In this document: in pieces, positions 1,471 to 60,218 of the stretch
Position numbering within the stretch: position 1 is the first letter of the stretch
Layout: the number at the start of each line of letters is the position of its first letter
Origin: Octopus sinensis
Taxonomy: Eukaryota
Direction: 5' to 3'
Length of the DNA stretch: 64,000 nucleotides
Assembly: GCF_006345805.1 (NCBI RefSeq)
Contig: NC_043000.1
Span: 90,520,001 to 90,584,000 of the forward strand
Program-made: the position numbers and the translations under genes
Notes under the pieces: generated by a model
Seen by the model: only the letters and a program-made list of their open reading frames with translations
Told to the model about the DNA's origin: nothing
Database searches by the model: none

Positions 1471-4082
1471 CTTGGCTGTAAAGTCGAATAACGATTTTTT
1501 TTCAATAAAAACAAATGACAAAAACGTTAAAACTGCTACGAAGAAAAAAAACCCAAAGAAAAAAATATGTATATAAATAAACAGAAACCAAAAAGTAAAA
1601 GAGAAAAAAGAAAAAGAAAAAAGAAACAACAATGAAAAACAAATAAACGATAACAATCTTTTCCTCCTCCTTTCACCACCACAACACATTCTTACTCACC
1701 CACACCACCACCACCACCACCGAAAAAAACACCCCCCCTTACCGCCCCCCCCAAAAAACAAGGAACTGAAGCCAACTAACACACATAACAAATATTGGTC
1801 TTGAATGGAATGGAATAACTAATTCTCTGGTATGTTTATTGGTAAGACGCACCGTAACTGTTTGCTAATTAATACCACAATTGCTACCATTAGCAGCAGC
1901 AGAAACAGTAGTAGTAGTAGTAGTAATAGTAGCAATAGTAGTAGTAGTTGTAGTGGTGGTGGTAGTAATAGTAGTAGTTACTACTTCTAGTCGTAGTAAT
2001 GTAAAAGTAGTCGTAGTACATGAATAATGGATTTCACAAGGCCGTTCCATATTAGATGTTGGCAAAAGTTTCTAACTTTAGGAAATCGAGTGACGTGCCA
2101 AAGCAAATAGTACATGACCTCCTGTAACCTACTAAAGAGTCTATGACCCTTGTTCAACCTGCCAACAGACACCATGAATAAGTTTTATCTGCGGTCACTA
2201 CATTTTTAACCTTAGAAAGAAGAAACACATACATATATACATACATACACACGTTGTATGGTGTAGATTACACGCACACATGCATAAACACAAGCACACA
2301 CACACATGTGTATACATGTGTGTGGAAAAAAAAAGTACAATAGAAGAAACGTAGAAAAAAAAGGATATGGAAAGAAAGACAGAAAGAAAAATATCCTTAA
2401 AAAAATAAAAGTTCTCTCTGAAAATATGCATGACAATGAACATTGTTGCTTGTTGTTATCGTTTGTTGTTTGTTGACGTTGATGTGGTTGTTTATTATAA
2501 TAACTACAGCAGTTGGTGGTGAAGACATCGCTGAAGAAAACAAGAAAAAAACCCCCCAAAAAACAGAACGAAACAAACGGAAACAAATACGCCGATGACA
2601 ACAACGGCCATGTTGAAGACAAGTTCGGTGACGATGATGATGATGATGATGATGATGATGACAGTGAGGAAGGAGAGGAGGTGGATCAAGAGGAAGAGAC
2701 CGATGATGGCAATGAAGATGATGGTAATGAGAATATTATTAATGCCGCTGCTGCTGCCACCTGCTACCTGCTGGTGCTGCTGCTGCTACTACTACTGCTA
2801 CTACTACTACTACTACTACTACGCCTTTTCCTCCTACTACTGCTTTATAGACTCCGCCGACAACACCACCACCACCGCGACTACCACCACTACCACCACT
2901 AGCTACCCCCACTACCCGAATACCCCCACTACCCCCACTACCAGACTACCCTCACTACTCCTCCCCACCGGCGCTGGCACAGGCACCACTGCCACCGCCT
3001 CCAATGTCACTGCTACTAATGTCACCACCACTGCCACCGCAACCGCTGCAACCGCCACCACTATCATCTCCACTGTCTTTGGTATCATTGTTGACTGATA
3101 AGAAACATGATTTAGAAAGAAAAAAAGGTGAGGAAAAGGAAGAAATTGAAGAAGAAGAAGAAGAAAAAGAAGAAGAGCAAGGACACAGTAACGATGGGAG
3201 ATGAGTCGGAGAACGATAAAAAAGAAAAGAACGCTGCTAGTGCTTCTGTTGTTTATGATGACGAAGATGATGATGATGATGATGAAAATGAAGAGCAGAA
3301 AGAAGAGAAACAAGAAGAAGAGGACGAAAGAAAAGAGCTACAAGAAGAAGAACAACGACAATAAAGATAGCAACACCGTCGACGACATACACGAAAACTT
3401 AGATTTGGTTATGAAATGAAAGTAAAACAGCTTAGAAACTAAAATAAGATTAAAATAAAGGTTAAATGATAGAATTAGTAAGATTTTAATTTAATCTTGA
3501 TACGAACAAAGACATATTCTTTCCAAAGTTTTTGTCTTATTTGAATGTTCTTTTGTGTTTTTGATTTTGTTGTTATCTTAATTATTATTTTTGATTGTTT
3601 TTATATTATTTGTAAATTTCATAATTTTTTTTTTTTTGGTTTGTTTCATTTTGTTTTGTTGTTTTTCTTCTTCCTTCAATTTTTATTTTCGGAAAAACTA
3701 AATCAAACACCGATATCACCCCGTATCTGTCATGAATATTTATACCTTTTGTTTTTAAAATACATGATTTGTTTGCCTGGGTCTGAAGAAGACGAAGAAC
3801 AAGAAGAAGGCGAAGAGGAAGAAGAAGAAGGAGGAGGAAGAAAGAAATTAAGACAACATTTATTTATAAATTTGTTAGTGTTTTCTTTTCGGTCCTTAAT
3901 TCCTCCTATGTTATCGTCCTTAAGAATCAGGCTTGACCCCTTTAATTAGATTTTACTTTGGGTCACATCGCAAACAAAATATTAAACAATATAAACAATA
4001 AAGAAAAAAGAATGGAGAAAAAGAGGAGAGAGAAAAAGGCGGAGGAGAATGTGACAAAGAGGGGATGATACTGTCAGAGGGA

Positions 4083-4623: not shown

Positions 4624-5317
4624 TGTTAGGAAATTATTAAAACGATAAAGACGTTCTGTCGTATATTTAAGTTAAACGGGCAGAGAGTTTTTCATTCTGC
4701 ACTGTAAGGTCAGGATGAAGTCCATTGTCAAAATGGGGGAAGCTAGATGTTAATAGCCAGCTTGGGAAACTCTAACAAATTGGCTAGGCTTTAGCTAACC
4801 TTTATAAGCAGACATAATTGTACCCCCAGTTTTTTGTGACAACATTCAATTGGATTCTGGAAGCTGTGATTGCCTGTTTAGTTTATGCACTTTGTGCTTT
4901 GTGTTAGGCATTTATGGAATTATTTCAAGCTCCAGGAATTCGCCAGAACTTTTTGCTTGTCAGTTTTAAAATAATTTCTGTCATATTTGGGTCCAAAGTT
5001 CGAAAACCAAATTTGTGAGGCCAATTTGTGAATCCAGAGTGACGAATCCAAGTTTATGAAACGAAGATGGTGAAGCCGGGTTTCTGAGTTCGTATTTCTG
5101 AACTATATATATTTTACCTTTATAAATATTTTGACTGCACGTCTAGTGTAGCATTAATTTATTTTGTTCGTATATATTTGTTTTGTATGTAGAGTGTTTG
5201 TTTATGCTGACACTTAATTGTTAATAAAATTTTACAAAGAAATTCGTGGTGTGTTGTTGTTTTGAGTTACCCCAACCTTTTTCGTTGTGTAAATTCGGGT
5301 TATGGTCACCAGGTCGT

Positions 5318-5375
<58 letters not shown>

Positions 5376-5538
5376 GACAGGCTTCTTTCAGTTTCCGTCT
5401 ATCAAATCCACTCACAAGGCTTTGCTCCGCCCGAGGCTATAGTAGAAGAGACTTGTCCAATGTACCAAACAGTGGGATTGAAGTCGGAACCATGTGGTTG
5501 ATAAGCAGGCTACCTACCACACAGCCACTCCTGCGCCT
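4376..5538 (-). mobile_element. Composite SINE (head A 5373-5538, internal microsatellite, body B 4376-4565) interrupted by a solo LTR
   Basis: Head and body match the intact A-microsatellite-B copies at 13711-14129, 55929-56408 and 61375-61794. Confidence 0.7.
4624..5321 (+). mobile_element. Putative solo LTR (698 bp)
   Basis: TGTTA...TAACA termini (TG...CA), TATAAATA at 5121, AATAAA at 5223, flanks ACAT/ATAT as an imperfect 4-bp TSD, lying inside a (CA)n/(TA)n tract. Confidence 0.6.
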
Positions 5539-5738
5539 ATATATATATATATATATATATATGGAAGCGGATTTGAAAATTTGTAGACAGTATTTGATAG
5601 GAGAAAGTGTGTATTGTTTAGTCAAAACTATATGAGAAATCATATTTAAGTATTTATACGGAACTTTAGGGGAATGACCAACTTTTTTAGTTCATCTCCA
5701 GTCTTGTATGTGTTTGGCAAATGTATATATATATATAT

Positions 5739-6372: not shown

Positions 6373-7989
6373 AGCAACGAGAGAATGAGAAGTAGCACTG
6401 ACGGTAACATTAAAATACACAGGAGCATTTTCCAAGGAGACTCGCTCTCTCCGTTACTCATTGCGTTAACCCTTCTGACAACTCATTGCCTTAATCCTTC
6501 TGATATTGCGTTAATCCTTCTGACAACTCATTGCGCTAATTCTTCTGACATTGCACTAATCCTTCTGACAACTGTACTGAGAAAATCCGGGTCTGCCTAT
6601 GACTTTACCAAAACCAAGATAAGAATAAATCACTTACTTTATTTGGATGATCTCAAGATATATACAAAAAAATGAGACAGATCGGAATTCTCTGCTCCAA
6701 ACAGTCAGAATATTCTGTAAAGCACTGGAATGCAGTATGGTGCAGGTAAGTGTGAAGTTCTAACTGGGAAGAGAAGCCGGAAGATAAAGTAGTGTTGCAA
6801 GACGATAAGATAATGGAAAGAGATATGAGAGAGGCACTATGGAGTACAAAAGGAGAACTGCGAAGGTGCACGAATCAAAATTAAATGGAAAGCGCATCAT
6901 TAAAGCCACTTACGCATAGGCAATGTCAGTATTAAACTATTCTGCCCCCTTTCTGAAATGGACAAAAATCAACTCGCAGAACTTGTGTAGAACAGTTAGA
7001 AAGCCACAATCCACCCAAAAAGTAATACTGACCAACTCTGTCTGACAGGAACACCAAATTCAGCTACTTAGGTCGCACATAGACTGTTTCATAACCTTAA
7101 TTACTAAATGTGGAAGACACTGTGGGTACTGTGACACTAGGTCTGAAAAATTATGTTGTACAGAGTAAAGAAAGAATACTTTCGGCAGCCAGAGATGCCC
7201 CAAAGGTGACAGAAGCAGTAAAAGAAATTAAAGAGAAAAAGAAAAACAACAGGATGAACTAATGAAAAGAAATGGAACTGCATGACCAATTCATGAAACA
7301 AACGGAAAATATTGGAAGTGAAACTCGCTGGATTTGGTTGACGGACGGAATCTTGAAATGAGAAACAGAAACGTTAATTATAGCGACTCAGGAATAAACC
7401 CTTAGAACAAATCTGAATAAAGGCAAAGGTCAACAAAACTCAAGTAGCAAATGTAGAATCTGCAGGAAAGGAGACGAGAGTATTAGTCACATTTTGATTG
7501 GGTACAAAAGGAGTACAAGTGCAGACATGACTGTATAGGCAAAAAAGTGCATTGGGATGTTGGTCGAGTATGTAGCTTCAAAACTTCGCTATAAAACTTC
7601 GCTATAAAGACTAACGATACTATTGAGGCAAGAAGACCAGACTTGATTATAGGGGGGAAATAAACAGTGCAAGATCATATATTTTCGCAATTCCCTACGA
7701 TAGCAGAATCGATACCAAAGAAATGGAAGAAATTGAGAGCTGAGGAAACTGTAGAAGACCAAGACAATAATTATTTCTTTTGCAATCGGTGCAGTTGGTA
7801 CAACACTCAAAATGCTATCTAAAAGACTGAAAGAAAGCGGAATTGAAACTTACACTGTCGAATTGTAGAAAAGTACCATCCTATATTTTATAAGAATCCT
7901 AATAAAAATTCTTGAAATTTGAGGAGACTTGTTGTCTTCTCAAACTTGGAGATAAAATTCTTGCTAACTATATTGGCATACACTTGCGT
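6373..7989 (+). mobile_element. 5'-truncated, degenerate R4/Dong-type LINE (RT C-terminal half, CCHC-type knuckle, REL endonuclease)
   Basis: IFQGDSLSPLL and NHLLYLDDLKIY RT motifs (ORF 6385-6675); CRICRKGDESISHIL and RHD near 7450-7530; RRPDLII and FAIGAVGT near 7630-7800; (TAA)n on both sides. Confidence 0.85.
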
Positions 7990-8252
7990 AATAATAATAA
8001 TAATAATAATATAATAATAATAATAATGATAATAATAATAATAATAATAGTAGTAGTAGTAATAGTAGTAGTAGTAGTAGTAGTAATAATAACTTGGAGA
8101 TAAAATTCTTGCTAACTATATTGGCATACAATTGCGTAATAATAATAATAGTAATATTAATAATAATAATAATAATAATAACAGTAGTAGTAGTAGTAAT
8201 AATAATAGTAATAATAATAGTAATAATAATAGTAGTAGTAATAGTAGTAGTA

Positions 8253-8300
<48 letters not shown>

Positions 8301-8309
8301 GTAGTAGTA

Positions 8310-8345
<36 letters not shown>

Positions 8346-8360
8346 GTAGTAGTAGTAGTA

Positions 8361-8416
<56 letters not shown>
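7990..8416. repeat. (TAA)n/(TAG)n tract containing a 47-bp duplicate of the LINE 3' end (8091-8137)
   Basis: Directly visible. Confidence 0.95.
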
Positions 8417-8417
<1 letters not shown>

Positions 8418-8812
8418 GAGATCACGAAGAAAAAAATACTTTCTAATTGATGTATCAATACCAGCAGATGACAACGTGTCTCTAAACGAAATGGAGAAAC
8501 TTTCAAAATTCAAAGACCTGAAAATAGAGGTAATTCGAATGTGGAGTTTAAAAACAGAAACAATTCCTTTCATTATAGGCGCATTAGGTATGATAAAAAA
8601 ATATTCAGAGAAATACATAACAAAAACACCAAGACTAAAAAAATATATATAACATACAGAAAATAGCACTACTAGGCACCACACACATCCTACGTAAAAC
8701 ACTTTTAGCACAGTAACAATAAGAGCATCACATCAAACCACAGCACATGCCCAAGGCACACGAAGCTGCGCTCGGTAGTGCAGTGACAGCACGTGATAAA
8801 AGTAAGACTACA

Positions 8813-8813: not shown

Positions 8814-8846
<33 letters not shown>

Positions 8847-11800
8847 CACAAAAATGAAACTTTACTGCCATACAAAGCAGTTTCTCCCGTGCACGACGTC
8901 TCGGTGAAACATGTGCGAAACACGTGTAATCAACACCGGAAAGTTTAAAAATTATAAAATATGAATGGAACAAAACAGTAAGTACATAAATTGCGTAATT
9001 ACGCATACACTCGAATGCCTACACAATCATGTATATATTTTAATACCCTAGGACTACGCATACACCCTAATGTTTACATAACTACGTGACATTTACAGGA
9101 CACACATACACGCACATGAAAACACGTGTCACAAACGAGGCAAAAAGAAAAGAAAACAAAAAACGAAATAAAACAATCTTTTATTTTTCGAACTAACACA
9201 GACACCACAAAAAACTATGCCCGGAGATAAATCTATCAGCAAAAAAATACAAATACAGATCTGTTAGTCTTAAAAAGCTACGTCACGAGCAATGTTTACA
9301 TGAAGAGATCCGTCTCCTAATGTCAACGTTCAAGCTCGTCATGCCTCAATCATAACAAAGCCGAATACAAACCAGGTTTGTCGTCTTCCGGGACATCAAG
9401 GGTCGCGTAGTCGAATGATGAACCAGGTTCGGTACGAAATATCAGCTACTAGTTCAAATATTCCCGAAACACAGGAGCTGGAAGTACCCCACAACGGGAA
9501 TATTCCAACACATGCCCATCCATGCTCGTCATCAAATAACCAAAAGAAAAAGAATGAAAAATGGTCTAGGGGAAATAATAAAGAAGTTCTTTACGGCCTC
9601 TTATCATGCCATATATCTTCCCACAAATAAATCTAATACTGTACAAAACTACTTAAACTTTGAAGTAAGACCCTACATAGACTGTAACAAACTTGCCAAC
9701 GCCAGAAGAAACATTATGAAAAGAAATTACTAACTGAATTAGAGATTGAACACATTAAACAATCAGTACGGGATAAAAGGAACGAAGTTGCAGCTAAAGA
9801 AGATATTACAGAATAAATAATTATAGACCAGTCCAGGGTTGATGAAAATGCAATAATAATCGAAAGAGTTAATGTAACTGATAGGCAAAGTGAAATACTC
9901 TCTGAACCAACCATAAACACTAAGATAAAAATCGAATAGATAAAGAAAGTTAGATATAAATTTACCCAACAGGACTGCATGTTCTAAAAAAATCAAATCA
10001 TGATTGAATGGCTTAAAATGAAAGAATCCCAATAGGAATGAATGCGATACTCTCCCGAAAATTCCCAACTCTAAACAAAACCTGAAAATACTTGGTAAAA
10101 TCCGCCTTGGACTTAAGATATAATTTCAGCTAATGATGTTGATATTACAGATCTCAACCATCTGTACTATGCATCCGCGAAAATCTCAACGATTCTATGT
10201 GGTGAAAAGATTAGAAAACAACAACATTCCCATAAAAAGCCTACTTGCCAAGAGCGTATTCAACCCCAAATTTAGCTATTTAGGTCTCACATAGAATGTT
10301 TAAAAACCTTAATTTTGACAAGAGTATCAAACCAACAGAAATCCGAAAATTAAAGTAAAAAATATATGAAAACCATATTTGACATCGATACCACCATAGA
10401 AACCATGAAGCAAAAGATATGTGCTAAAGCTGCCGGCAAAGCATGGTATGAAAAGCGCGTTAGATTCTTCAAGGACAATAACATGTTAAAAAATAACCCA
10501 ACAAATTTTTACAGGAAGATAAGGAAAATACCAGTTACACTAAAGTCTATCCCATCAAAAGAAGTGCAGGAATTTTGGAATAAAATTTGGACAGAAGAAA
10601 AAACACTCAATGAAAAGGCCCCTTAGATTGATAGAATATCTAGACTTAGAATCCTTAGAAGAGCAAAAGTGGGAGGGTATCAAGGTAGAGGATGAAAGGT
10701 CTGCCCTTAGGAAGTCAAGCAAATGGAAGTCTCCAGGAAAGGATAACATTCCTAACTTCTGGTTGAATGTCTTTCCAGAGAGCCATGAATTGCTAACAAA
10801 ACTTTACAACAATGTTTTGCAACGATCCAGTGTGATTTCCTCTTACCTAGTTAATGGTGTAACATTCCTACTTTCAAAAAATGAAGAAACAAATGAACCA
10901 AAAAAATATAGACCCATAACCTGCTTACCAACAATGTATAAAATGCTAACATCTGTCTTGACTGAATATACCTATAGCCTTTTAATAGGAATTGGTATAT
11001 TCCCTAATGAGCAAAAAGGATGTAAACGTGGGTCTTATGGTTGTAAAGATAAGCTACTCATCAATAAAATGATCTTGGAAGATTGTCACAAACGACACAA
11101 AATCTTGTCGATAACTCTGCGAATGCAGAGCCGAGGGTACGGGCTTGAAGAAGTTCTCGGTATCGAGCGCGGGTAAACGGCGGGAGTAACTTGGACTCTC
11201 TTCAGGTGAACGGATCGAAGGCGACGAGGATGTTGCCGCTATCCCTATCTACTACTGTCTAGCGATAAGCAGAGCTGAGTTACTACGACGAAGACCACGA
11301 GTGTGTGTGTCCGTGTGTTATCCACGCGCATCGAAGCGGCGATTTCACTTGAGAGAGTTCTCGGTCGAGTGCACGAGTCGAAAGAGTTATGCGGCCGGTC
11401 GATTGCCGGGGAGTAAGTCTGATAGACTATAAAAAAGCTTTTGATAGTCTACTACATAACTGGATTAAGAAATATCTAGAAAAGTTTAAAATAGCGCCTA
11501 CTCTGCGAAACTTCTTGTCTGTAAGTAAGAGATCATGGAGAACCACATTGACTTTGAACAGTGACAATGAATCTCTTAATGCTGGAGATGTAAGAATTTC
11601 ATGTGGCATTTGCTAGGGTGACTCTCTATCACCACTCCTCTTTTGTCTAGTCTTAATATCGCTCTCGAAAGTGCTCAATGATCTACAATACAATTATAAA
11701 ATGCTTGATAAAAATATAAATCATCTCATTTACATGAATGATAAAATTCTCTTTGTAAAAAATGACCAACAACTACAGGGCTTACTAGCGACTGTTAAAC

Positions 11801-12680
11801 AATTCAGTGGTGACATCAGGATGCAATTTGGTCTTGATAAATGTGCAAAAGCTACCTTTATCAAAGAAAAAATGACAGAAACATCCAATTTTAATCTTGA
11901 CCAGCAGAATACCATAAAGGAATTAGAACCAGCGGAGAGCTACAAATACCTAGGAGTATCCGAATCAAACATTCAGTGATGAAGGAAAGGATCAGAAGAG
12001 AATATTATCGCAGGGTAAGGGCAATACTCAAGAGAATGCAAAAAACAGGATCGAAGCGATCAATACTTTAGCCATACCAGTCGTGACTTACAGTTTCAAT
12101 ACCATTAACTGGTCAATTACTGAAGTATGTAATCTTGACAGAAAAATACGAAAATTGTTGACAATGCATAGAATGCACCACCCTAAGGCAGATATAGAAC
12201 GACTTTACCTGCCAAGAAAAAAGGGAAGCCGTGAACTTTTACAACTGGAATTAACAATGGAAATTGCCAAAACTGGCCTAGACACCTACCTGAAAAATTC
12301 TGATGACTGGATGTTATAACTTGTCTCAAAGCATTAAAACAACAAAACATCATACTCAGTAACAAAACAGGCAAAGGAATATCTTTGGGGTTTGAATAAT
12401 TCACCTCTGGAAACATGGGTGTTTCGTTCAACATCCTTATACAACCCTTATTCAGGTTTTTTTTTGTGTAGGATGGGTTACTCGACCTGATGAAAATTCT
12501 AACTGGGTCCCACCTGCAATGTCAGGCGCTGTTAATTTTGATATGAGATCACCATGTTGCGCACATATGGTTGCGATTCATGTGTCTGGTGTACCCTTAT
12601 CAAATAGATAGTCATGATGTGTATACTGGACTTCGTATATTTTACACCGGTTTCACTTTGATGGAAAGCACTGTTCTCAA
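8847..12680 (+). mobile_element. Long degenerate R4/Dong-type LINE (N-terminal region plus RT), REL domain deleted, TAA tail; 5' boundary uncertain
   Basis: Frameshifted ORFs 9415-12319 with WKSPGKDNIPNFWL, YRPITCLPTMYK, EQKGCKRGSYGCKDKLLINK, IDYKKAFDS, NHLIYMND, QFGLDKCAK, YKYLG and HHPKADIERLYLPRKKG; (TAA)n from 12679. Confidence 0.85.
11120..11417 (+). other. GC-rich insertion composed of degenerate 28S rRNA fragments, splitting the LINE RT
   Basis: 11166-11207 matches the conserved 28S core AGCGCGGGTAAACGGCGGGAGTAACTATGACTCTCTTAAGGT at 39/42 (first 26 nt identical). Further 28S-like blocks at 11126-11147 and 11239-11265. TCTG repeats at 11116-11119 and 11418-11421. About 55% GC by hand count, in AT-rich LINE sequence. 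Confidence 0.85.
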
Positions 12681-12691
12681 TAATAATAATG

Positions 12692-12755
<64 letters not shown>

Positions 12756-12949: not shown

Positions 12950-13624
12950 CACATATATTTATATTTTTTTAATACTTATGCACATACATTTATATATATA
13001 TATTTATACATACGCATAAGCATACATATAAGCACAGACATGTATATACTTACACACACACACACACACACACTCACACACGCACACTCACACACTGACA
13101 TACATCTACACACTTACACACACACAGGGAAACTACTGTTTTAACTTTCCCCGCCAAAACTATTTTGTTTAATTAATTACTCTGGTGTATTTAGTCGAAC
13201 ACATCTGCTGTTATATCGATTACAAAGAAATATGACAGTTTAGAACATATCAGCAAATATAGGAAATACACAATTTCGTCATCTTTGAACATAAATCACG
13301 ATATATATACTATATAGACAGATTGCCTATTTATATAATTATTGTCATGAAGGCTTCGGGGCTGTTTTTGAGATCGGCCATTTTGTTTTGTTCTTTTTTT
13401 GCGAGCGTTAGTCTTCTGCTTCTCTTTTCACTCCTATTATATCCGCATGTGTAACGTGGATGTTACAAGATTTATCGTGCAAGGAAGCTAGTGGTAACTG
13501 ATTTGCACTACCGCTGCAAAACTGACGCATAACGTGGTTTTTTACTTGTATATTTTTTGGGATCAAAATATCAAAATATGTTTATCAGCTGACTGACAAA
13601 ATAATACACACACACACACACACA

Positions 13625-13692
<68 letters not shown>

Positions 13693-13710
13693 ATACATAG
13701 ATATATATAT

Positions 13711-14126
13711 AGGCGCAGGAGTGGCTGTGTGGTAGGTAGCTTGCTTACCAGCCACATGGTTCCGGGTTCAGTTCTACTGTCTTCTATACAGCCTCGAGCC
13801 GACCAAAGCCTTGTGAGTGGATTTTGTAGACGGAAACTGAAAGAAGCCCGTCGTATATATATGCATATATATATGTATATATATATGTATATATGTATAT
13901 ATGTATATATGTGTATATGTTTGTGTGTCTGTGTTTGTCCCTGCACCATTGCTTGACAACCAATGTTGGTGTGTTTACGTACCCGTAACTTAGCGGTTTG
14001 TCAAAAGAGACCGATAGACTAAGCACTAGGCTTACAAAGAATAAGTCCTGGGGTCGATTTGCTCGACTAAAGGCGGTTCTCCAGCATGGCCACAGTCAAA
14101 TGACTTAAACAAATAGAAGAATAAAA

Positions 14127-20227: not shown

Positions 20228-20380
20228 CGTCTGCCTGTCTGTATTCATGAATATCTATGTATCCATATGTATACATTTTTATCTATCTAGCAATCTATAT
20301 GTCTGTCTATCTATCCATCTATGTCTGCCTGTCTGTTCGTCTTTCTCTATTTTTCTTATTCTTTTTCCCTGTATGTATAT

Positions 20381-20526
20381 GTGGCTGTGTGGTAAGAAGC
20401 CTGCTTCCCAACCACATGGTTCCACTTTCAGTCCCACAGCATTGCACCTTAGGCAGGTATTTATTGGATGAAAGGCGGTGCTCCGGCATAGCCGCAGTGA
20501 AATGACTGAAACAAGTAAAAGAATAA
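20381..20526 (+). mobile_element. Internally deleted A/B SINE (head fused directly to the body 3' end)
   Basis: GTGGCTGTGTGGTAAGAAGC head continuing into AAAGGCGGTGCTCCGGCATAGCCGCAGTGAAATGACTGAAACAAG. Confidence 0.7.
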
Positions 20527-20586
20527 AATAATATAAATATAGTATATATATATGTATATATATACATACACACACACACACACACA

Positions 20587-20629
<43 letters not shown>

Positions 20630-21379
20630 CACTTATGTATACACACTTAGACATACGCACACATACATGTATAACGAGGCACTTAGATATACGCGTGTGT
20701 GTGGTGTATATATCTGCAAGAATTGTAAAGATAAACAGCCGTACATTTCTAAGTCATCTTTCCTCTATAACGTTATGTATACATGTATATACATGTTTCC
20801 ATACATACATACATACGCAATATATACATACATATATACATACATGCTTACATATATGTATATGTGTATATGTGTCAGTGCGTATATAAAAGTGTAAATA
20901 CTTTAATTCCTAATAAATGCATTTATTTATAGACACAACACTTCCTTGTTAGGAAACGAAACGGAACGAAACGAAACAGCTTTGTACTTTGGAACTCTCA
21001 CTGAAAAAGGAGTCGATTTTCGTTGACTGTCATTATTACCCGCTAAACTTGCATCACATTCTCAAAGAAGTAGTCTCGTTTGGATCGCTTTACCATCAGT
21101 CATACGACACTACGCTAACGTCAACGAACCATTGGCAACTAGCGAAGAGAACATATAACACAAATCGCTGTACAAACTCTCCTGCTACTAAATAAGGTAT
21201 CTGATTATGATCTTTGTCATTGGAAGCCGTCTAACAGTCCGTAATGTTTACCATAACAGCACCATTAATAATTGTCTGGTTGAGGATGCAGTGTTGCCGT
21301 GCTTTTAGTAGGACATATGTACTGAGATAACTATTTTACTTGTCTCGACTCTTTGTTGTTGGTATTGGTAGTTTTGTTG

Positions 21380-37786: not shown

Positions 37787-37886
37787 NNNNNNNNNNNNNN
37801 NNNNNNNNNNNNNNNNNNNNNNNNNNNNNNNNNNNNNNNNNNNNNNNNNNNNNNNNNNNNNNNNNNNNNNNNNNNNNNNNNNNNNN
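37787..37886. other. Assembly gap (100 N)
   Basis: Run of exactly 100 N. Confidence 1.
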
Positions 37887-59060: not shown

Positions 59061-60218
59061 ATGATAATCGTGGGATCAATAATAATTCAACTAACCCTAA
59101 CTCTAATTTTAGAAAATATAATCTGGTTGAATATTCCTTTTAACTGGGCGATATTATCGGATATATACGGCAAATTCAAAATAATACTAGAAAAAATTTT
59201 CCAGCCTCTCATAAGTATCATTTCTAAGAGAACAGTTAGGATTTCTTACTCAACCCTCCCAAATATGTCCACTATAATAGCTAGAATTAATAATAAAAAC
59301 ATTAAGTTAGCCAGGAATAATAAGACTAATTCCAGCATGAATACCAATAATAATTGTAATAATATTATCATAGATAAAAATAAAAATAAAAATAATAACA
59401 ACAATAATAAGAATTATCAAGATAAGTGCAGCATCAACAGCAATGGAATAACTAATAATGATATTGATATTAATAGGAATAATAATAATGATAATAATAT
59501 GAGCAATACAAATAGAAATAATATCGGGAATGAAGATAACAACGATATCTATAGCAGTAATAAGCATTCGGATATTAATACAAACAATAATAATAGCAAT
59601 ACCAATAATGTTGATAATTATGATATGACTATGGTAGATCTAAATGATAGTATAATCGGATCGATAAACGGTAACACATCTTCAGATAAAAATATTATCG
59701 ATAATAACGATAATAATACTCATGATAATTTGAATAGCAGCAATATGAGAGATCTATCCTTAAATAATTCTAAATCTGAAAATTATCTCCCTAGTTGCAA
59801 TTGTAGGATTAAGTCAAAATGCCTGACATCTGGTCTGTGTGGGGCCCATAATGTAATCTATAAATGTACTATAACTACTGCGAATAGCAAATTCTTTTAT
59901 CTAGGTTGTACTATAAAATTTAAACAAAGAATAAGCAATCATCTCTCCTCTTTTAAGTTACGTCATAAAGCTAGCTGTACCACACTTTCCAGTAAGATCT
60001 GGGAACTCAAAACTAATGATATTAAATATAACCTAAAATGGGAAATAGTTAGAAAGGCAATGCCTTATAAAAATAATAGGGTAGGTTGCCAACTCTGCTC
60101 CTTGGAGACATATGAAATTCTAAAACATAGAAAAAATAAAAACCTATTGAATAACCGTATTGAGATAGGTCAGTCTTGCATTCATTCAAAAATCAAAACT
60201 CTAAAATGTTTTAAATAG
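59061..60218 (+). CDS. Penelope-like ORF fragment (385 aa) with C-terminal GIY-YIG endonuclease
   Basis: ORF track; motifs as listed for the element. The true ORF continues upstream through apparent frameshifts near 58900 and 59110. Confidence 0.8.
   Translation: MIIVGSIIIQLTLTLILENIIWLNIPFNWAILSDIYGKFKIILEKIFQPLISIISKRTVRISYSTLPNMSTIIARINNKNIKLARNNKTNSSMNTNNNCNNIIIDKNKNKNNNNNNKNYQDKCSINSNGITNNDIDINRNNNNDNNMSNTNRNNIGNEDNNDIYSSNKHSDINTNNNNSNTNNVDNYDMTMVDLNDSIIGSINGNTSSDKNIIDNNDNNTHDNLNSSNMRDLSLNNSKSENYLPSCNCRIKSKCLTSGLCGAHNVIYKCTITTANSKFFYLGCTIKFKQRISNHLSSFKLRHKASCTTLSSKIWELKTNDIKYNLKWEIVRKAMPYKNNRVGCQLCSLETYEILKHRKNKNLLNNRIEIGQSCIHSKIKTLKCFK

Follow-up and report, generated by a model that had tools for sequence, protein, structure and literature searches.

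A partly 28S-like insertion that interrupts the reverse transcriptase of a LINE in Octopus sinensis

How did some 300 bp of GC-rich DNA resembling 28S ribosomal RNA (rRNA) come to lie inside the reverse transcriptase (RT) of a long interspersed nuclear element (LINE)? The question is raised by a locus of Octopus sinensis contained in 64,000 nucleotides of assembly GCF_006345805.1 (contig NC_043000.1, positions 90,520,001 to 90,584,000), a stretch that will be called the window. An original prediction, made by reading this stretch, described a 28S-derived insertion cleanly splitting the RT of a Dong/R4 LINE, and took it for a retroposed 28S cassette, possibly a member of an undescribed family of short elements. 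Judged by sequence comparison, the first part of this insert is 28S-derived, well beyond chance. As for the whole, the reading that we favour, with about even confidence, is a non-functional, one-off, microhomology-guided patchwork insertion, made by template switching and drawn in part from a diverged 28S-like template.

The interruption itself is plain, and every feature that the original prediction listed as seen is present in the sequence. The open reading frame (ORF) of the LINE runs through ...HKRHKILSITL to position 11119 (CKDKLLINKMILEDCHKRHKILSITL) and takes up again with IDYKKAFDS from 11422, which is the jump and resumption that had been described. The intervening length of 302 nt equals 3n+2 and breaks the RT frame, and excision of exactly 302 bp restores a single continuous one (...ILSITL/IDYKKAFDS); when the protein read without the insert is aligned with eight relatives, no gap opens at the joint. 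The insert, which is oriented like the LINE (+ strand for both), has the diagnostic joints GGGCTTGAAGAAGTTC and CTCTTCAGGTGAACGGATCG. Its composition, put at about 55% GC by the original prediction, measures 55.1% over 11120-11421; the flanks have about 33% GC, with an observed/expected (o/e) CpG ratio of 0.47-0.48, and their 100-nt windows range from 29 to 42% GC.

How far does the resemblance to 28S reach? The block first noticed was reproduced, with 39 of the 42 positions of 11166-11207 identical to the eukaryotic large subunit (LSU) consensus and an exact run of 26 nt, and the similarity proves significant well outside it, since the 28S-like part covers about 165 nt (11117-11280), not 42. 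As references, 120 loci were fetched by an exact 70-nt 28S pattern, and the 67 of them with 400 nt on both sides were aligned to give a profile. Searched with nhmmer against the whole window on both strands, this profile matches 11163-11265 at E=1.2e-10, and the second-best match in the window (11117-11151, E=0.061) directly adjoins the first. The LSU_rRNA_eukarya model, run with cmscan, aligns to 11112-11254 when a sub-region is searched (20.9 bits, E=0.0026) and reaches 14.3 bits (E=0.39) over 431 nt. Both scores are far lower than the Rfam gathering score for LSU, which is 50, because the rRNA is present only as a fragment, and an Rfam scan of the whole window at gathering threshold returned no match. 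By Smith-Waterman alignment the insert scores 76 against 28S, where shuffles score 18.8 +/- 2.4 (z ~24).

The order in which 28S is represented is unusual. Two pieces, A and B (Table 1), lie side by side, and the one that is downstream in 28S comes first: piece A, at profile positions 510-544, stands 5' of piece B, at profile positions of about 361-530, also given as 389-530, so that the 28S-like pieces, by these alignments, are probably, if not certainly, permuted. In local alignment to 28S, piece A scores 36, a value reached by none of 500 shuffles, and matches at 25 of 29 positions that are at least 90% conserved. Piece B, compared pairwise with the consensus of the 67 loci, scores 115; among conserved positions it agrees at 83 and differs at 18. 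The two meet at the joint GGGCTTG/AAGAAGTTC, where they share 2 nt (TG) of microhomology. Within piece B, the best-conserved block ends at the R2 insertion site, AAGG/TAGCC in 28S, and directly thereafter a stretch of invariant 28S is gone, seen by nhmmer as a 36-column gap and by cmscan as 30 consensus positions facing 2 nt. Past AGGT the insert has neither TAGCCAAATGCC nor recognisable R2 sequence. With this universally conserved core gone, no functional rRNA is possible.

Pieces A and the end of B, which overlap in 28S coordinates, also betray the history of their template. Both read GCAGAGC(C/T)GAG where all 28S have CCACAGCCAAG, and they thus share three derived substitutions, for which a rough hand calculation gives a chance of ~0.004; the template would therefore have diverged before being copied twice, or before duplicating. 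Moreover, where at least 90% of the 67 references agree, the changes comprise 11 from AT to GC, 2 from GC to AT, and 9 that are strand-neutral. This GC bias, together with the CpG o/e of 1.46, is the opposite of what in-place decay in 33%-GC DNA would produce. A plain processed 28S retropseudogene was considered and is ruled out by the permutation, the core deletion, the shared changes, the GC bias, and the half of the insert that is not rRNA. The retroposed 28S cassette of the original prediction survives in part: some of the insert is indeed 28S-derived and in sense with the LINE, but it is permuted, lacks 36 nt, has diverged, is non-rRNA for half of its length, and shows neither the tail nor the small-RNA head of a short interspersed nuclear element (SINE).

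That other half (11281-11421) contains a (TG)n-like run at 11300-11319 and, at 11348-11378, a weak repeat (71%) of 11144-11174. The final 15 nt of the insert are weakly like 28S helix 69 (GGGAGTAACTATG), a likeness equalled by 7 of 500 shuffles. Neither an Rfam match at E<=10 nor an nhmmer match of the 28S profile was found in 11281-11421, and the same holds for 11266-11440. The insert was also compared with two related LINE copies, namely L001, an O. vulgaris paralog (OX597814.1) 84-86% identical to the copy in the window, and L002, on a contig of ENA ERZ25878469 with ~66% nucleotide identity. Against L001, L002, and the 120 ribosomal DNA (rDNA) loci, only the (TG)n was matched, and no similarity to the LINE sequences of the window, L001, or L002 was seen.

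The TCTG reported at both junctions is present, as part of a longer imperfect repeat, TAACTCTG on the left and TAAGTCTG on the right, whose 7/8 identity speaks for homology at the joints. Its status as a target site duplication (TSD) is open to doubt, for ACT CTG (T-L), the two codons next to the insert on its 5' side, replace a near-invariant A-W: before IDYKK, the relatives have W in 87 of 89 cases and A-W in 75 of 89, and by hand calculation at least three substitutions in six bases would have a probability of ~0.02 in a copy of this age. In addition, cmscan pairs UaACUCUGcgAAUG with UGCUCUGAAUG of 28S, where the colinear place in 28S reads GCTCTGAATG. Up to 6 nt to the left of 11120 may thus belong to the insertion event, and the simpler reading of the junctions would be that CTCTG arrived with the insert and that about 6 nt were replaced, rather than 4-8 nt duplicated. 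The split is less clean than was described: on the right the LINE resumes to the nucleotide at 11422, but on the left the T-L codons are anomalous with respect to the relatives.

Table 1. Positions, in the window, of the interrupted LINE, its insert, and adjoining features
Feature	Position	Strand	Description
LINE 5' part	9400..11119	+	N-terminal region and first RT half; 5' limit approximate
Left direct repeat	11112..11119	+	TAACTCTG; last 6 nt encode T-L
Piece A	11117..11151	+	28S-like, tagcGAAaccacaGccaaGGGAAcGGgcttgg, just 3' of R1 target site; nhmmer profile positions 510-544
Insert	11120..11421	+	302 bp, 55.1% GC, CpG o/e 1.46
Piece B	11145..11280	+	28S-like: TGAAGAAATTC, helix 69, R2 site, gap, R1-site block, GCAGAGCTGAG
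Core block	11166..11207	+	Ends at AGGT, the R2 insertion site; cmscan and nhmmer
Deletion point	11207..11208	+	30-36 nt of invariant 28S (AGCCAAATGCCTCGTCATCTAATTAGTGAC...) gone, right after R2 site
Second conserved block	11240..11265	+	TCCCTATCTACTA(CTG)TCTAGCGA, R1 target-site region, 3 extra nt
Second half of insert	11281..11421	+	GC- and CpG-rich; no rRNA or Rfam match
Right direct repeat	11414..11421	+	TAAGTCTG; 7/8 identical to left copy
LINE 3' part	11422..12385	+	RT from IDYKKAFDS on; stops, degenerate YMND motif
AT-rich inverted repeat, 13 nt	11423..11451	.	Starts one base past insert; hairpin -7.7 kcal/mol, weak
(AAT/TAA)n array	12679..12755	.	Downstream; further arrays 7989-8417, 8814-8846

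Could the insert nevertheless be a mobile unit in its own right? It might be one copy, of 302 bp or of 294 bp with a TSD of 8 bp, of a short non-autonomous retroelement not described before, which would have taken its body from 28S and been moved in trans by a LINE. The imperfect 8-bp direct repeat that flanks the insert would fit such an element, as would the significance of the 28S-derived body and the shared derived changes, which give the 28S-like sequence a history of its own before landing; moreover, a 28S-derived SINE exists in mammals (PMC4994717). However, other features by which such elements are recognised were not found. The insert ends in ...GCCGGGGAGTAAGTCTG, and neither a poly(A), a microsatellite, nor a LINE-derived 3' end forms a tail to it; no SINE head or promoter boxes were found in it, and Rfam scans gave no transfer RNA (tRNA), 5S, or 7SL match. 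Its RNA folds at -99.5 kcal/mol, no better than shuffles (z = +0.6), and the left repeat overlaps codons that are not LINE-like. No second copy of the insert occurs in the window, where the common octopus SINE does recur. A concatenated six-frame translation of the insert, searched against 5.8 billion predicted proteins, returned nothing even at E<=10, and insert-specific DNA patterns had 0 matches in metagenome, prokaryote-genome, and viral collections, which is weak evidence as regards the host genome itself. On this balance, we consider a short retroelement unlikely.

Several other identities were tried and rejected. A ribozyme, including an HDV-like (hepatitis delta virus-like) one, or another structured RNA is disfavoured by the absence of any Rfam ribozyme match at E<=10 and by the fold value given above. 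Inspection by eye revealed neither terminal inverted repeats nor ends of the TG...CA type, which removes a miniature inverted-repeat transposable element or a solo long terminal repeat from consideration, and no register of the 302 bp has a GT start with an AG end, as an intron or "introner" would.

An insert of foreign composition that occurs a single time also calls to mind an error of assembly or sequencing, such as a chimeric read or a mis-filled gap that joined rDNA-like sequence into the LINE. Against this, what each junction has in common with the LINE is 4-8 nt at most, well short of the k-mer of any assembler, the LINE resumes to the nucleotide, and the only N-run of the window (37787-37886, 100 N) is 26 kb from the insert. 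Contamination, moreover, would be expected to be canonical rDNA, which this sequence is not. No E. coli, phage-like, or prokaryote match was obtained, and in the plasmid and E. coli collections the insert was matched only through the 42-nt 28S core, in seven "plasmid" records. We regard an artefact as very improbable. Regarding those seven unannotated small bacterial PLSDB records (NZ_CP087163.1, NZ_CP090427.1, NZ_CP117868.1, NZ_CP066061.1, NZ_CP050529.1, and two more), which are 92.9% identical to the core, they are probably themselves cases of eukaryotic rDNA contamination.

What kind of LINE is the host, and could its nature explain the insert? The RT domain matches Pfam RVT_1 at 1.8e-22, and 459 relatives of the LINE protein were found in the protein collection; of those that bear a name, the O. 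vulgaris hypothetical protein P0054 is nearest, with 81% identity. Two relatives, P0003 and P0008, align by tblastn to 10712-11113, and the best matches of P0003 among solved structures (PDB) are R2 proteins. Beyond the RT, L002 and L001 carry a CRVC...H...C zinc knuckle and a region like a restriction-like endonuclease (RLE); the zf-RVT match in the relatives, at 23.6 bits, is below the cut-off of 27.5. The copy studied here ends at ~12385, before the zinc-knuckle/RLE domain and ~0.9-1.1 kb short of the 3' end of the family, and the loss would be a later deletion or rearrangement because truncation of LINEs normally affects their 5' end. Past 12385 there is unrelated sequence, and after it come an (AAT)n array and a long one of (AT)n. 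Dong targets TAA repeats and forms, with R4, the R4 clade (PMC3774820; for the biology of R2, see also PMC5035012). Given the R2-protein matches, the RLE-like relatives, and the (TAA)n flanks, it seems reasonable to call the host an RLE-group LINE of "Dong/R4-like" type, in line with the original prediction, this being an assignment by likeness.

The 28S coordinates of the insert bring in another RLE element as a possible source. An RLE element specific for 28S, similar to R2 or R4, could have inserted here off target and with its 5' end truncated; it would be one whose untranslated region (UTR) contained diverged 28S-like sequence and which mistook TAACTCTGA of the LINE for TAACTATGA of 28S. 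The stretch of 28S that is represented coincides precisely with the R2-R1 target region, the block that is best conserved stops exactly at the R2 site, RLE elements do without poly(A), and the last 15 nt recall helix 69, if weakly. The R4 site in 28S lies midway between those of R2 and R1. However, the strong 28S-like part is on the 5' side of the insert and not at its 3' end, and it includes 28S from downstream of the R2 site, which is not expected of a 3' UTR mimic; past 8/9 nt, the similarity of the targets, by eye, is at the level of chance. HDV-like ribozymes occur at the 5' ends of R2, R4, and Dong LINEs, but neither such a ribozyme nor R2-like coding sequence accompanies the insert, and R2 has been reported in Mollusca from the oyster only. 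To our knowledge, no 28S-specific RLE element of this kind is known from cephalopods. This origin appears improbable.

In a related form, the 28S-like block would have landed off target at a TAACTNTGA pseudo-site as a copy, perhaps 5'-truncated, of a cephalopod retroelement or UTR module not described so far, which imitates the R2-to-R1 interval in rearranged form and serves the pairing of RLE LINEs (relatives of R2 and R4) with rDNA. The use of the R2-to-R1 interval, the end of the block at the R2 nick, and the 28S-like UTRs of fish R2 elements keep such a target mimic, borne by a transposable element, alive as an idea, though we judge it to be quite unlikely. Were it true, the conserved islands of the insert (helix 69 to the R2 nick, and the R1-site block) would reflect selection for target pairing, and, if the module were a recurrent mimic used by rDNA-specific elements, these islands would show which parts of the target such elements require.

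The related copies tell something about the site as well. L001 has a 115-bp deletion that corresponds to window positions 11005-11119, with its right edge at the right edge of the insert within 3 nt, and ~70 bp further on there is an inverted copy, 176 bp long and 98.3% identical, of L001 sequence located 850 bp downstream (L001:5855-6030). The deletion and the inverted duplicate (L001:4740-5015) look together like a complex templated rearrangement. L002, in turn, has lost the codons NLSIAWIDYK by a 30-bp in-frame deletion over the site (L002:4380-4400). The 28S profile has no match in L001 or L002. From these alignments, the insertion spot seems to be prone to rearrangement, and a hot spot driven by the hairpin next to the insert is a possibility.

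The coincidence of edges permits still another explanation, in which a non-autonomous master copy of the LINE subfamily had carried the insert beforehand, so that several copies have it in common, and the deletion in L001 arose when an RT skipped the GC-rich block. In its favour, the right edges of the L001 deletion and of the insert coincide to the nucleotide, and a GC-rich block with a minimum free energy of -99.5 kcal/mol would be a plausible roadblock in an AU-rich RNA. However, a master with a broken RT frame would need to be mobilised in trans, L001 and the window copy are as dissimilar as indicated above, and the comparison covers these two copies only. The probability that we attach to such a master is low.

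We return to template switching and patchwork, for which the non-colinear 28S matches, the TG joint, the (TG)n-like run, and the 120-140 nt of non-rRNA sequence are cited, along with junction homologies of 4-8 nt and the sense orientation of the foreign segment; the rearrangements of L001 and L002 at this spot and the lack of mobile-unit hallmarks count in its favour as well. According to this scheme, a polymerase would leave the LINE template at 11421/11422, hop at least two or three times to other templates, from which it would copy ~300 nt, and return to the LINE via short homologies (TAAsTCTG, CTCTG); at least 165 nt would come from an already diverged, GC-rich 28S-like sequence that spanned the R2-to-R1 target region, and the donor may have been pseudo-rDNA or a 28S-like transcript. 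The most likely polymerase would be the LINE's own RT, at work during retrotransposition of this very copy. Copying its own RNA from 3' to 5', the RT would exit at 11422 and continue on other RNAs, at least one of which would be a diverged 28S-like transcript used twice, before returning through CTCTG/TCTG. An insertion acquired in this manner would make the copy dead on arrival. R2-type RTs are known for template jumping in vitro, and it is this property, together with the sense orientation and the precedent of 28S/LINE-1 chimeras, that inclines us to the RT version. Almost as likely is a DNA-level version, in which a break at this place underwent templated repair mediated by microhomology; it would explain the same anatomy, and the rearrangements of L001, equally well.

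A number of observations weigh against this scheme. Known LINE/RNA chimeras have the foreign segment at the 5' end of a truncated LINE, and an internal insertion demands that the polymerase return to the LINE almost exactly at the point of its exit. No donor locus was found, and the diverged 28S-like template is deduced from the insert alone. A weaker colinear alignment of the first 19 nt, proposed by cmscan, competes with the permuted piece A. The clustered rearrangements rest on three copies, too few for statistics, and the 13-nt inverted repeat, a weak hairpin, is not kept in L001, so that it hardly accounts for a hot spot. Finally, a one-off status of the insert is presumed from the 64-kb window, in which no other copy occurs.

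The surroundings of the insert are AT-rich and contain many microsatellites, as well as several fragments of one LINE family, and no host gene is evident near the insert in the window. A second, more decayed copy of the same RLE-type LINE family is seen at ~6400-8650, with its RT at 6403-6669 and C-terminal pieces at 7266-7651 and 8431-8631. The two upstream (TAA)n arrays (Table 1) part the two LINE copies, an arrangement that suggests tandem insertions into a TAA microsatellite. In three further places (5246-5635, 13563-13949, and 20319-20660), the ORF translations have GTMWL(V/I)S(K/R)LPTTQPLL in common, suggesting a short dispersed repeat; situated beside (TA)n/(CA)n, it is presumably the common octopus tRNA-derived SINE, to judge by its looks. 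An ORF of 385 aa at 59061-60218 has no Pfam match; its middle is long, of low complexity, and rich in Asn, and its C-terminal part is rich in Cys.

If the reading that we favour is true, the insert would be of little consequence for its host, which would merely own one more dead LINE with captured junk. It would nonetheless preserve a neat record, made in nature, of template switching in several steps, performed by a LINE of the R2 superfamily or taking place at one, and would indicate that diverged, GC-rich 28S-like sequence exists in this cephalopod genome outside functional rRNA.

How does the insert compare with what is known from other systems? A close parallel may be sought in primates, where 28S/LINE-1 chimeras were described at 18 loci, with a median 28S segment of 269 nt, 83% of them in sense; they often start at ~nt 3636 of human 28S and are ascribed to template switching of the RT or to RNA ligation (PMC13174262). 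As in those chimeras, a few hundred nucleotides of 28S-type sequence are fused in sense to a LINE. Unlike the octopus insert, the primate segments are authentic rRNA placed 5' of a truncated L1, an element with an apurinic endonuclease (APE-type), whereas here the insertion is internal, with the same LINE on both sides, the host is of RLE type, and what resembles 28S has been permuted, has lost a part, and has diverged. Nucleotide ~3636 of human 28S is presumably close to the piece found in the insert, an estimate rather than a computed position.

Another parallel is offered by some fish R2 elements and by R2Hm-B, which have 28S-like sequences in their 3' UTRs (PMC5035012). These are, like part of the insert, diverged imitations of 28S that lie just upstream of the R2 site, end there, and are less conserved than real 28S. 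However, the mimic in fish R2 and R2Hm-B is the 3' terminus of a complete R2 within rDNA, whereas the octopus insert comes without R2 sequence, includes 28S from downstream of the site as well, and resides in the RT of another LINE. The mammalian SINE28, a documented multi-copy family (PMC4994717), is likewise a short 28S-derived sequence outside rDNA. In the octopus, by contrast, the piece is from the domain IV core, has no tail, and has no family in the 64-kb window. SINE28 reportedly derives from the 3' end of 28S.

There remain the fragments that arise with no mobile element of their own. In yeast break-capture studies, filler DNA is reportedly captured at double-strand breaks, and rDNA-derived pseudogene fragments are reported by Robicheau et al. 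2017, as cited in PMC10946416. The insert is similar to both in being made of non-functional rDNA-like pieces away from rDNA, with short homologies at the junctions and a mosaic build such as is sometimes met there; break capture, however, has no orientation preference and usually takes up contemporary rDNA, whereas the divergence of the insert from 28S is large and GC-biased. All in all, the insert is best filed as a fresh example of known phenomena, the capture of rRNA-like sequence into a LINE and the formation of rDNA-derived pseudogene fragments, and is unusual in some details: it sits inside the LINE, its donor would be permuted and diverged, and its host is of RLE type.

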